Positions 8,518 to 36,158 are shown, counted from the stretch's first letter. The stretch: DNA of 36,158 bases from Lenisia limosa (GCA_001655205.1 LPNZ01008034.1:1-36158), one strand, 5' to 3'. The notes: generated by a model from the sequence alone, not told the origin. Program-made: numbers and translations.

Positions 8518-11500
8518 TGTCCTTGCGTTACTATTTGGAGCAGTCTTTTCATCGTCAAGTCATGACTACAATGTTTGCGACAGGCACTATCCCGAGTACC
8601 CGAAGGCGGCGTCAGACTTGACCCTTGAGAAGGCTGTGGTAGGTTTTCTTGTGCCTTTGCTATTAGCTAGGTGTCATTTCCCCTTCTTTTACAAAATAAC
8701 ACAGCAAAAATCTCCAAAGAACTAATAATGAAGACATACTTAACTAGAATACATTTTTCAAGAGCTGTACAGAAGATGTCTTTGATAATTCGCCATTGTT
8801 TAGCGGACCAGATTTCACAGCATTGCCCAATATCATCATTATAGTTTTGGCAGACGTAAAAGACAATGTTATAACTCTTATCTCCCAAGGTTGTGATTCG
8901 ACATGGCGATAGAATGTATATTAAACCGGAGACTTGTTGGGTAGACAACGAGAATGAGTGAGTGGGTAAAGCAATGTTTCTTAAAAATACATTTGCAATA
9001 GTGTAAAGCATTGGTGAGTTCAAGTTATCAGGCATTCATATCTCGCATGATAAGGCCTCGATTATATTCTTATATTGTAGATGGGACTGCTCAGGTTTCA
9101 GAAGGGTATTCACTGACAGCCCGGGAGATGAAGTTGTGACTAGGACTATGAGGTGGGATTAACCAATGAGATATAATAATACTTTTTTTTTGTTGAATGA
9201 CTGCGTATGTCTTGCAGTTTCAGCTTATGCAATACAGCCATTTACACTATGATCTGTTTCTTCAAACAATTTGTCAAGTTTTATGACTGGAATTTGATTT
9301 AAACAAGGAACTTAATACTTTTCTCAATTGTAGAATGGGTTCGGTACCTTCGTAGTAATATCCTAATTTATACAAGCTGTCCCGTTCAATCTTACTAATT
9401 TCTATTTTAATGCACATTATAGCATATGTATCATTTAATCCGTGGTGTAGGAAGGAGTTTATGCCTTTGCGGAACTACCAGAAGGGAAGTTGCATTCTCG
9501 CTGAACTTACCCCGAAGGGGCATGAGCAACATATGAAGGTATGTTGTGGGGGAAATCATATGAAGGTCTGTTTTGGGGGACATTGAGTGGTGTGTATACA
9601 AGAGGGGTTTCTATGGGAGAATATCTTAACATCTATTATTGTTACACAACCTTTTGCTTTTGATGTCACGTAACATATTGTCACATATTATGTACACTAT
9701 CACACAGAGCTATTAACACTCCATGAACAGGAATCAGCTAGATTCTAAAGACCACAATTTTTCTACACACATGCAGTATATAATGGTTTAGAACGGCAAA
9801 ACCTACCGGGATATCTACGTCAATCAGTATGGTCTTGCTCCTTCAGAGTTCAACGGAGATGACGTGTACGTTAGAAGGTGCGACCAACTAAAATTTAGTG
9901 GTTATGGTCATCTGCTCTCATTAATCATACTCTAGCACCAACAAATTTCGTACCATGAGCAGTGCTGACGCATTCATGAAGGGAATGGTGGGTGATGGAT
10001 GGCATAGGCTTAGATGCCCTATATTTCTCGATATGGCCATTTAAACCCACCTCAATGTTTATTTGATTGTATGTGAATTGATGAATTCAGTACCCAACCA
10101 GTGAATCCAGCGAGTATTCTGAGATTCCTGTTCACACCATGGATATCGAAGTAGGACTGGAAAGGGAACTATTCAGTTCAAGGGGATGACTTTGGTTGAA
10201 AATAATTCTGAAAAATTGAGCTTCATTGTATTTTCTATCGATTGGATAACGATTGTGGTTTACTGTGTAGATTGACGGTCTTGATCCTACCCCAACCGTT
10301 TGCCCCATTGTAGGCGGATTTGTTTCGTTAATATGGGACGACGCTTGGCAGTACACATAATCCCAATAGACTAGTTCCAATTGCCATCATATTGTAATTC
10401 ATTTTTGTATTTTGATTTCTAAGATCAAAGAAATTCAAGATTCGGCCGAAAATGCAACTGAGATGATTGATTTTCTGCACAACCACCAAGAATTCCTTGT
10501 AAGTTTATTTTTTGTTATTAGTTGTCTAACCTTTCAAGGACAAAATGAGGCACCTTTTTGGAACCGGGGATCAGTGGACTTACCAACGTGCTTTTGACTG
10601 TTGGTGGAAATATGGGGGGGTATTTTGACTTCTGCTAGATATCGAAGGCAGTTGCAAATCAATACGTTTATTCTCTCGCAGGTTTGACCACTCACATTTG
10701 CCATGATATGAAGCTTCCCAACGGTGTCACTCTTGACGATGTTAATAAGGTAACAAAGGGTCGATGTTAATAAGGTGACAAAGGGAGTGGAGACTGGGTT
10801 GATTTTTCTTTTTAGTTGGGACCAGTTTCACCTTTACACTATTTTTCTGAGTGAATTGGCAGTATTTACAAAGTAGATGAAATTCATTAAGCTGTGGGCC
10901 CTCAACTTCCGTATGACACACCCTTCAGCCCATATCGGTCTCACCGCTAATGCAGGGCAAATTATGGAGGTATGGAACACTCTTATTTGTTTACATTGGG
11001 TTTCAACCATTTCAACACTTACTCCATTTCAGGAATTGGGTTACCTGCTAAGCAACAAGCATACACCTAAGTTCTCCCTTGTCTCTGGACATGACTCAAC
11101 TGTGGGAGGCCTTTAATATATCGTACGACTATATTCCTCAATATCCTGTTGGTACATAATGGTGGATGGCTTTAGCCAGATACATTTATTACATTCTCTT
11201 CACCCCCCCCCCCAGCTATTCCCAGCCATTGCCGCTATTGCGAAGCCAGCAGAGGATTGGACCCCCTACGCCACAGCTCTTATTTTCGAAGTTTTCTCTG
11301 ATGACAGTAAGCTTTAATTTCTACCCAGCGTCGTTTGATCGTTTCTTAAGAGTTCTTTGTATTATATGAATTCTCTGATTTGTCTACCTTTCATTAACAT
11401 AGATGGCATGCAGTTTGTGCGAGCTCTTTTCAATGAGAAGGTCATCACAATGAGTGAGCGAGAGTATGATCAATCTGAACAATCCAACGGCAGCGTAATA

Positions 11501-11689
11501 ATTGACTGTGTTAGAATGTGGAGACCTTTGTACGGTGTCGGAGTTCTCAAGCATGATAAAGGTTTGGATGGCGCATTTAGAGGGGGGGGGGCACTACCCT
11601 TAACCGATTATTATGAAATTTTTCAATTTTATCCAATTCACTTGTAGGCGTTTTACCAGCCTGAAGGCTTCTGCAACGGGCACCTCTAA
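8518..11689 (+). CDS. Histidine acid phosphatase (branch 2; secreted/lysosomal type); start codon lies in the N-gap at 8435-8517
   Basis: Hydrophobic leader VLALLFGAVFSSS, catalytic RHGDR (VVIRHGDRMY, about 8889-8915), CILAELTPKGHEQH, VYVRSTNKFRTMSSADAFMKGM, the HD motif in FSLVSGHDST, WTPYATALIFEVF, VRALFNEK, ending ..CNGHL*. Confidence 0.9.
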
Positions 11690-34300: not shown

Positions 34301-36158
34301 CACCAGGGTCAACGACATAGTAGATCCCGTCAATGGTAATGGAGGTCTCCGCAATATTGGTGGCAATAACAACCTGTGCGGTAAAGGAAAGAAAGTAACA
34401 ACCTTGATCGCAGATAATAATAACCAAAAGCACCCCCCCCCAACCTTTCTGGCTCCTGGTGGTGCAGGTTCGAAGATTCTAGACTGCATTTCGGAGGGCA
34501 GGGCGGAATAGACAGGGAGAATGATGAGGTCTGGAACCTGGGGGGGGGGGGGGNNNNNNNNNNNNNNNNNNNNNNNNNNNNNNNNNNNNNNNNNNNNNNN
34601 NNNNNNNNNNNNNNNNNNNNNNNNNNNNNNNNNNNNNNNNNNNNNNNGATAACAAAACAAACAAAGCCCAGGCCAGTCACTTCTGCAGCACCGCATCCCA
34701 TCACCCCAACGTACAATTAATTATTTGAAAATTGAAGTCAAATTGTATAGAAATTATATTAGATGATGGATGCTATGAACTATGTAATGGGACATTCTGC
34801 ACACCTTTGGACCAAGCGCTTTCATTCTTTCGAAGAGGATCTGACAAGACGTATCGATTTCTTCCTAAGCGAGGTAAATGGTAAATGGGTGTCTCAACGG
34901 ATAACTCGTTTTGGAAGATGGAAAGTAAAATGAAATTGGCCACAAAAACAAACGCTCATGACACCTTTTTAAGAGCTTTATCAGAATCGATATTCAAGGA
35001 GAAGCCATTATACCCCCCCCCCCCNNNNNNNNNNNNNNNNNNNNNNNNNNNNNNNNNNNNNNNNNNNNNNNNNNNNNNNNNNNNNNNNNNNNNNNNNNNN
35101 NNNNNNNNNNNNNNNNNNNNNNNNNNNNNNNNNNNNNNNNNNNNNNNNNNNNNNNNNNNNNNNNNNNNNNNNNNNNNNNNNNNNNNNNNNNNNNNNNNNT
35201 GGAATGTTGATAAAGGTTATTGGGATTTATTCGGTGAATGTAGAATGAAATGCAAAGAAGATCTCTAGACAAAAAGCAAAAAGACCCATTGCTCACCAGC
35301 ATCAAGATAGTCAGATTCGGGCATTTTGGAGTAGAGCACTTCGACAGGGAACGTACGACCAGGAATGGTGAAAATGGGGCAATCGTAGAAGTAACTCGAA
35401 AACTTCTCAGCATCCAGCGTGGCAGAAGTGACAATGAGCTGAGGGGAGGTAAGACAAGTAAAAATCAGTCAAGTGTTGTTATTTTTGAATTGGATTCTAT
35501 TGATATTGACTTGCATGCCACAAGGGTAACATCACATTTATTGAGAATTGTATACGCTTTTTTCGTAAACGCAGTCGCACCTTGAGATCAGGCCGGGCCT
35601 TGACAGCCTTCTTGAGGAGTCCGAAGAGGACATCGGTGTTGATTGTCCGTTCATGCGCCTCATCAAGCATGATGACTGAGTAGTTCTGAGATGATGAAGG
35701 TGATGGCAGTGTGAATGGGTTGTATTGACAGAGGGAATTGAAAATAAATACATCATATCATCAGCAAGAAGCAGTCGCCCACCTTCAGTTCAGGGTCCAT
35801 CAGACACTCTCTCAAGAGCATACCATCCGTCATGTACTAGGAGGTCATGGCTTGGATGCAGGGGTGTGGTGAGGACGGAATTAGTGCTCACGTCGTGCAT
35901 GATATAGCGAAAAAGAGAATACGGAATATTGAAGAAAAAGAGACACAAACCTTGATGATGGTGTCAGGACTGGTGCAATCTTCGAAACGAATACTGTATC
36001 CAACCTAATAGCAAGTCACTTGGAAAAGGCAGCATGCAGTACATACGAAATAAAATAATCAGATGCATTTGAAAACAACAGCCCCATTTCCTTACAAGAC
36101 ATCCGTACTCCCTCCCACTTCCTGGCCGACTCGACATCCGTACTCCTCTGATACACGT
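31307..36158 (-). CDS. DHX8: DEAH-box pre-mRNA splicing helicase Prp22/DHX8, 5'-partial
   Basis: [118 protein letters not shown], and the DHX8-type C-terminus [34 protein letters not shown]. Confidence 0.97.
33011..33053 (-). repeat. Intronic dispersed repeat family, copy C (DHX8 intron)
   Basis: TGACTGGCCTGGGCTTTGTT is identical to copy D; ATCAACCCTTGTGTG matches copy B at 13/15 nt; truncated by an N-gap, then poly-C. Confidence 0.8.
34648..34703 (-). repeat. Intronic dispersed repeat family, copy D (DHX8 intron 3' part)
   Basis: Reverse complement reads GATGGGATGCGGTGCTGCAGAAGTGACTGGCCTGGGCTTTGTTTGTTTTGTTATC, followed by an N-gap and a poly-C-AG acceptor. Confidence 0.85.

Follow-up and report, generated by a model that had tools for sequence, protein, structure and literature searches.

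A 36,158-nucleotide (nt) stretch of DNA from Lenisia limosa (GCA_001655205.1, LPNZ01008034.1:1-36158), which as a whole we call the window, contains six introns that begin with a tandem copy of their own upstream exon end and 5' splice donor. At all six sites splicing relies on the exon end and donor of the upstream copy, and the later copies belong to the intron. Such duplications occur in excess at donors over acceptors and intron interiors, an observation that applies to this window only, which was chosen for showing the pattern. The window has a G+C content of about 40% and is nuclear DNA from an intron-dense eukaryote. An original prediction, made by reading the DNA without database searches, had named these six junction repeats, and every one of them was confirmed in the sequence. 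The six sites, a seventh array, and a possible older copy are given below; a slash marks a splice junction, a downstream copy is called an echo, and sites 3 to 5 lie in a gene for glycogen debranching enzyme (GDE).

9530-9580, plus strand: site 1, a 27-nt unit in two copies (9530-9556 and 9557-9580)
10737-10785, plus strand: site 2, a 25-nt unit in two copies (Tandem Repeats Finder (TRF) score 91)
18590-18788, plus strand: site 3, 9.3 copies of a 21-nt unit (TRF score 325)
23201-23249, plus strand: site 4, exon tail GTTCCAGGCTATGGA and donor GTTTGTGGGG, repeated as GTTCCATGGG and GTTTGTGGGG
26231-26323, plus strand: site 5, a conserved GDE exon tail (..RDGADVEIV) and donor, then two intronic copies
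36076-36146, minus strand: site 6, a 35-nt unit made of 27 exon nt and 8 intron nt
30548-30657, minus strand: seventh array, 27 nt x 4, starting 6 nt after a consensus-like GTATG
17736-17780, plus strand: possible old echo, GACTGTGTCAAGCTGAG/GTT against GAC-GTGTCTTGCTGCGTTT, 9 nt into intron 17753-17923

A diagonal scan of the full 36 kb that made no use of annotation (periods of 12-80 nt; match +1, mismatch -2; 20 dinucleotide shuffles as the null) found 7 loci at scores of at least 13, against a mean of 0.15 in the shuffles, and 9 loci at scores of at least 12, against a mean of 0.35. The low-complexity filter dropped a single locus, a poly-A tract, so intronic repeats were not hidden by filtering. 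Eight distinct non-trivial loci were found, namely the six donor sites, the 27-nt x 4 array at 30548, and an AT-rich intronic repeat at 25005; 6/8 straddle a 5' splice junction. The loci are small tandem duplications or minisatellites, with head-to-tail copies of 21-35 nt units above chance. The array at 30548, which the original prediction had placed at 30548-30655 as a seventh case starting just inside a donor, is real, but it is not a junction copy, and both its putative donor and its host exon are predicted. The open reading frame upstream of it has no Pfam match and gave a sub-threshold lead to bridge-like lipid-transfer proteins.

To read the repeats as junction copies, the donors must be fixed independently of them. 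At sites 1 and 2 this is provided by an RNA contig, which joins 9538 to 9792 (intron 9539-9791) and 10749 to 10877 (intron 10750-10876); the donor used is that of the first copy in both cases, and RNA thus does not place these two donors elsewhere, as it had been proposed to check. At these two sites the contig shows only the upstream donor, and contigs drop minor forms. None of the sampled GDE words was present in the RNA run. Introns of the GDE gene were taken from spliced protein-to-genome alignment with eight full-length homologues and kept if chosen with at least 5/8, a rule applied because the aligner could not be trusted at site 3 or where conservation is weak, in the N-terminal and middle parts. 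The site 4 donor (23215/23216; intron 23216-23343) was chosen by 8/8 homologues and the site 5 donor (26254/26255; intron 26255-26420) by 7/8, and the junction peptides ..DVPGYG/ (site 4) and ..DGADVEIV/ (site 5) agree with the GDE homologues. At site 6 the joined peptide lies gap-free on residues 82-112 of human DHX8 (E = 2.8e-12), which fixes the minus-strand intron 36005-36118.

The donor of site 3 is less firm than those of sites 4 and 5. The GDE homologues align through ..ATVYKLG to 18607, and a donor GGG/GTGGAC at 18607/18608 (5.4 bits) fits the conserved Gly and a C-run acceptor at 19121; the alternative, CAA/GTTGG at 18600/18601, is closer to consensus (10.1 bits) and requires another acceptor. 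Both candidates lie inside the repeated unit, so the earlier description of nine copies of the junction holds either way, as 9.3 units containing the junction, although the exact donor is ambiguous. The GDE frame, continued into the array, runs into a stop within the third or fourth unit (after about 17 codons), and the array is therefore intronic. The intron model 18608-19121, which contains an assembly gap (18951-19101), is tentative in its 3' part.

Every unit joins 9-27 exon nt to 4-18 intron nt. At site 1, copy 1 is made of the last 9 exon nt and the first 18 intron nt; the 24 nt at 9530-9553 are repeated 27 nt on with 22/24 identical, and the echo donor, in frame at +27 nt, has its GT intact (9.6 bits for the first donor, 6.0 bits for the echo). 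A possible third copy at this site was too weak to count. Copy 1 of site 2 is made of the last 13 exon nt and 12 intron nt, with the 24 nt at 10737-10760 repeated 25 nt on (23/24 identical) and an out-of-frame echo donor at +25 nt whose GT is intact. The unit of site 3 begins in the GDE exon tail (..ATVYKLG), and the array holds eight strong CAA/GTTGG donor-like sites; over 18661-18785 the variants GGTGTGG, GGTGTGG, and GGGGTGG recur with a 63-nt period at 97-100% identity, which indicates that the array expanded in three-unit blocks and that its inner copies were homogenized. At site 4, 23211-23225 is repeated 24 nt on (14/15), the copied exon tail carries a 5-nt deletion, and the in-frame echo donor at +24 nt scores 9.7 bits versus 8.1 for the first donor. 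The site 6 copies share an exact 14-mer 35 nt apart, the second beginning 7 nt into the intron; allowing one 4-nt gap lengthens the match to 33 columns, which take in the donor, and the copied GT is now AT.

The copies differ in age as well as in position. At site 5 the exon tail GCGGACGTCGAGATTGTCG is followed by intronic copies that are 18/19 and then 12/15 identical to it, so that identity drops with distance from the exon, and GT is gone from both; these graded copies suggest repeated events at one donor. At sites 1, 3, and 4 the echoes are in frame (+27, +21, and +24 nt, respectively), free of stops, and with GT kept; the old out-of-frame echoes of sites 5 and 6 are without GT, and the young out-of-frame echo of site 2 retains it. 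Microhomology of 0-3 nt and filler of 1-3 nt were read at the youngest copy junctions. The possible old echo at 17736-17780 is suggestive only (score 9-10, where the non-cognate null gives 0.8% at scores of at least 10), and an echo at a distance of about 105 nt in intron 26585-26752 (13/15) was too weak to count.

We then asked how often an exon tail recurs at the start of its own intron. For 47 well-supported introns (19 from RNA and 28 from GDE), the last 25 exon nt were compared with the first 110 nt of the same intron, with non-cognate exon-intron pairs as the null. Scores of at least 10 were reached in 5/47 introns against 0.37 expected (Poisson 4e-5), and scores of at least 13 in 3/47 against 0.04 expected. 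Exon heads compared with the ends of their own introns gave 0/47 at scores of at least 10 (0.46 expected) and 0 at scores of at least 13 (0.02 expected), as expected from the claim that acceptors carry no equivalent duplication. Intron-interior 25-mers, compared with the next 110 nt, reached 13 or more in three tracts only (the site 3 array, an AT-rich tract, and a T-run), and intron interiors held no complex duplications beyond the site 3 array and the AT-rich tract. The proposed concentration at donors is thus borne out. The proposed link to G-rich donors was also recovered. Donors follow the consensus GTRRG; 45/48 introns have G at +5, and about 8/48 donors have a run of at least four G at or just after the junction; 4/8 of these G-run donors are duplicated versus 2/40 of the others (Fisher p = 0.005).

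We give a guarded preference to an explanation in which intron starts are prone to duplication and selection then favours events that leave the first donor in use. A small tandem duplication would copy 9-27 nt of exon end together with the 4-18 nt of intron that follow; the upstream copy would stay the exon end and working donor, and the downstream copies would become the start of the intron and decay. With the first donor retained, the mRNA would be unchanged. The first 5-20 intron nt, G-rich on the sense strand, may be prone to polymerase stalling or breakage, and fill-in with end-joining repair, or re-priming slightly upstream, may then duplicate the flank, which is consistent with the 0-3 nt of microhomology at the youngest junctions. 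Selection would keep only those events in which the first donor is still used and would erode out-of-frame echo donors. Repeated events at one donor would push older copies deeper into the intron, as at site 5, and the downstream copies of site 3 would have grown into a minisatellite. The route from DNA breaks to small tandem duplications is itself established (PMC8355091). The original prediction had proposed a donor-specific mutational process, and for that proposal the donor excess stands, and the bias may be mutational or selective; one of its suggested templates, a splicing intermediate, does not survive in the form of the free 5' exon, because each copy has exon tail and intron head contiguous. 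The R-loops that it also named stay a putative cause, and the decoy or alternative donors that it foresaw stay putative as well.

Several points weigh against this preferred explanation. The break or stall step is one that we infer rather than observe, and the data come from one 36-kb window selected for the pattern, with just 6-8 events, and from three assemblies that probably share one read set. The donors of sites 2 and 6 have GGG only, and long poly-G and poly-C runs elsewhere in introns, many of them bordering gaps, have no adjacent duplication. In addition, a strand-symmetric G-run process should strike C-run acceptors too, and the absence of duplications there needs selection. A further reading, which we regard as doubtful, is that a process aimed at the first intron nt repeatedly breaks the DNA and re-copies the junction, with conveyor-like displacement of older copies; such breakage might be coupled to transcription or splicing where intron starts are G-rich, or might come from an endonuclease associated with an intron-end mobile repeat.

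The rivals to a duplication-prone intron start rank by weight as evenly spread slippage with selection, function of the echoes, mobile-element footprints, and assembly artefact. The first of these, which we consider unlikely though the most serious, holds that replication slippage is even along the DNA and that the donor bias is apparent, arising from dense junctions, from purging of duplications within exons and over acceptors, and from the longer recognizability of copies beside a conserved exon. Junctions are indeed dense (14 introns in 2.3 kb in the gene hosting sites 1 and 2), duplications within exons are certainly purged, and in another system a junction duplication can wreck splicing (PMC9052919). 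To weigh this account, we placed six duplications at random in the annotated 18.3 kb, scoring them as whole tracts because the register of a tandem repeat is arbitrary. Over all placements the donor share was 8.5%, so that about 8% of random placements straddle a donor, and the probability of five or more of six was 2.5e-5; with donor, acceptor, and intron-internal placements surviving, the share was 13% (P = 2.3e-4), and with donor and intron-internal placements surviving, 15% (P = 4.3e-4). The selection-filtered share of 13-15% thus falls short of the 5/6 observed (P = 2-4e-4), although these P values overstate the surprise of a single window because the window was picked for showing the pattern. 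Moreover, the three youngest events (92-96% identical) are all at donors, and longer detectability is therefore not the cause, and the G-run association (p = 0.005) is not predicted by even slippage.

Echoes might instead be retained because they are useful, as extra U1-binding or G-run elements that reinforce the upstream donor or as in-frame alternative donors that give isoforms 7-9 residues longer. We think this improbable. Three echoes are in frame and stop-free with GT kept, which at 3/6 is within chance, and at site 4 the echo GTTTGTGGGG is perfectly kept and outscores the first donor while the exon-tail part of the copy has decayed. Set against this, the RNA contig uses only the upstream donor at sites 1 and 2, older copies lose GT and, at site 5, the G run, and a copied exon tail has no role under this account.

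More improbable still is that the duplications are footprints of a mobile element, whereby the endonuclease of an intron-end repeat would make a staggered cut at a donor-like GGT and fill-in, either with no insertion or once an element had been excised, would leave a tandem target duplication. A candidate repeat exists: GATGGGATGCGGTGCTGCAGAAG.. occurs at 24259-24289 and 27123-27174 (plus strand) and at 33023-33053 and 34651-34702 (minus strand). Its four host introns belong to two genes of opposite orientation, and each copy has the sense of its host and is followed by T and C runs. At sites 1 and 2 the copies stand just 1-3 filler nt apart, which this account would also allow. Yet the units, at a variable 21-35 nt, far exceed the 3-9 bp duplications of known introners (PMC9860276), and no element lies between or beside the copies. 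Self-BLAST found dispersed repeats at 24259, 27123, 33023, 34651, and 24720/25085 only, and none in the introns of the six sites as read, that of site 3 being partly gap. Introner-type target duplication over the intron ends was rejected for the 48 introns, since intron starts matched downstream exon starts at 2.71 of 10 nt in cognate and 2.66 in non-cognate pairs and so gave no end-to-end signal; exon tails matched intron tails at 2.92 (cognate) and 2.96 (non-cognate), and this geometry was rejected as well. Two minus-strand introns, 36005-36118 and 12872-13096, do start with 6/10 nt identical to the downstream exon start (GTGGGAGGGA versus GTTGGATACA and GTGGGTACCA versus GTGAAGAACA, respectively), with no excess over chance in the 48 introns.

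An assembly artefact, for instance overlapping contig ends that stayed unmerged or two haplotypes joined next to each other, is conceivable in a gap-rich, homopolymer-rich scaffold whose assemblies may share their reads, but it is very improbable, given that the copies differ by substitutions and indels, that periods vary between sites, that no repeat abuts a gap (the closest being the end of the site 3 array at 18788 and the gap start at 18951), that the nine-copy array has internal variant structure, and that two other assemblers give identical sequence. Specifically, a Logan contig of the DNA run covers 9400-15282 with zero differences and a depth even at 36.8, and the sequence of 24954-27261, which includes site 5, is matched at 100% identity by a contig from a separate ENA assembly; these two assemblies thus reproduce sites 1, 2, and 5. 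Over 17300-18950, 99% of sampled words were found in the DNA run. Neither hallmark of an artefact, absence from the other assemblies where these were compared or identical copies at contig ends, was seen.

The duplications resemble several described systems in part. New intron positions are known to arise through tandem duplication (PMC2891723), and as in that model, splice signals are duplicated, one copy suffices, and units that are multiples of three allow alternative products. There, however, the duplicated segment is exonic and holds AG/GT, and the intron gained spans exactly one unit, with the GT of copy 1 as its start and the AG of copy 2 as its end, whereas here an existing junction is duplicated, the acceptor lies outside the copy, and no new intron position arises. 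We therefore rejected the possibility that each intron is one duplication unit, as the introns are 114-514 nt and the units 21-35 nt. Duplications from break repair (fill-in by Pol alpha-primase/CST and end joining by polymerase theta; PMC8355091) are likewise head-to-tail units of tens of nt with little or no microhomology and occasional filler bases; that mechanism was defined with engineered breaks in mammalian cells, whereas the present events are known from sequence. Introners (PMC9860276) are alike in that a duplicated target can supply a splice site and in their setting, an intron-dense genome with intron-shaped repeats, but their duplications are 3-9 bp, one at each intron end, and flank a whole element, whereas here both copies are at the 5' end, span 21-35 nt, and enclose nothing. 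In human FGG, a duplication of the exon 8/intron 8 junction likewise copies exon end, donor GT, and intron start in tandem; it is a single 403-bp pathogenic event that disrupts splicing (PMC9052919), in contrast to the many short events here, which are tolerated and fixed with the upstream donor retained. The papers searched yielded no description of recurrent donor-polar junction duplication, and nothing relevant on G-rich and C-rich intron ends. Within those papers, the original claim that no such system had been described stands for the recurrent, donor-polar pattern, but single junction duplications (PMC9052919) and duplication-derived introns (PMC2891723) are known. Site 3, with nine units and homogenized 63-nt blocks, and the 27-nt x 4 array also resemble minisatellites. 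We know of no anchoring of ordinary minisatellites to splice donors.

The six sites lie in three genes, and a fourth gene converges on the first of them.

9449-11903, plus strand: host gene of sites 1 and 2, from RNA contig junctions
11776-13433, minus strand: convergent DUF846/TVP23-like gene, from Pfam, with five introns from the RNA contig
about 13879-28239, plus strand: GDE gene, host of sites 3 to 5, by homology
31746-36158, minus strand: DHX8/Prp22-type DEAH helicase gene, host of site 6, by homology and Pfam OB_NTP_bind

According to the RNA contig, the gene at 9449-11903 has 14 GT..AG introns of 40-253 nt within 2.3 kb and exons of 39-93 nt. By our reading, its motifs resemble those of a histidine acid phosphatase, which is a putative family name. 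Pfam searches of single exons and stop-free segments mostly gave no match, and none for this gene, because the exons are too short. A single RNA contig passes from this gene directly into the convergent DUF846/TVP23-like gene (11776-11903), so the pair overlap or touch at their 3' ends. The GDE gene has about 44 introns, 28 of them well supported; its best references are mammalian and Corallochytrium proteins, and it aligns to the Bos indicus GDE (P0045) over 1366 residues at 43% identity. The DHX8/Prp22-type gene extends past the end of the window. Presenilin-like exons lie at 5527-6178 on the plus strand (Pfam PF01080, E = 2e-6 and 2e-8, just under the curated cut-off).

The window contains 13 assembly gaps, 10 of which are flanked by G or C homopolymer runs of at least 12. 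They include gaps at 15305, 18951, 27262, 29383, 32922, 33666, 34554, and 35025, and assemblies break at the homopolymer runs. The spliced alignment of the Bos indicus GDE is collinear over all five gaps in the gene with zero residues unaccounted for; these gaps therefore fall in introns and leave order and frame intact. Within genes, C runs directly precede acceptors on the sense strand, as in CCCCCCCCTCCCCATAG/. Introns as short as 38-41 nt (10499-10538, 13239-13276, and 15178-15218) share genes with introns of several hundred nt. A 31-nt inverted repeat (24720-24750 and 25085-25115, 97% identical) lies in the 542-nt GDE intron 24700-25241 and adjoins the AT-rich tandem tract. Introns of Physarum are homopolymer-rich and repeat-filled as here (PMC4758236), a resemblance only.

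How introns grow, shift their borders, and gain alternative splice sites is still argued mostly from isolated cases. In this window, about one donor in eight (6/48 among well-supported introns) has a datable copy of itself, and if this holds genome-wide, hundreds of natural replicates would be available for the rate of junction duplication, for the spliceosome's choice of donor, and for the speed at which spare donors fall silent or are taken over as in-frame extensions. A mutational origin of the donor bias would also link genome instability to a signal for splicing, the G-rich intron start. If slippage and selection alone are at work, the pattern would still be a clean read-out of selection on splice-site duplications. 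And if older copies are in fact displaced in conveyor-like fashion by a process aimed at the first intron nt, that process would steadily lengthen introns and supply spare donors, exon extensions in frame, and minisatellites anchored at donors, acting in one of the most intron-dense gene sets known.

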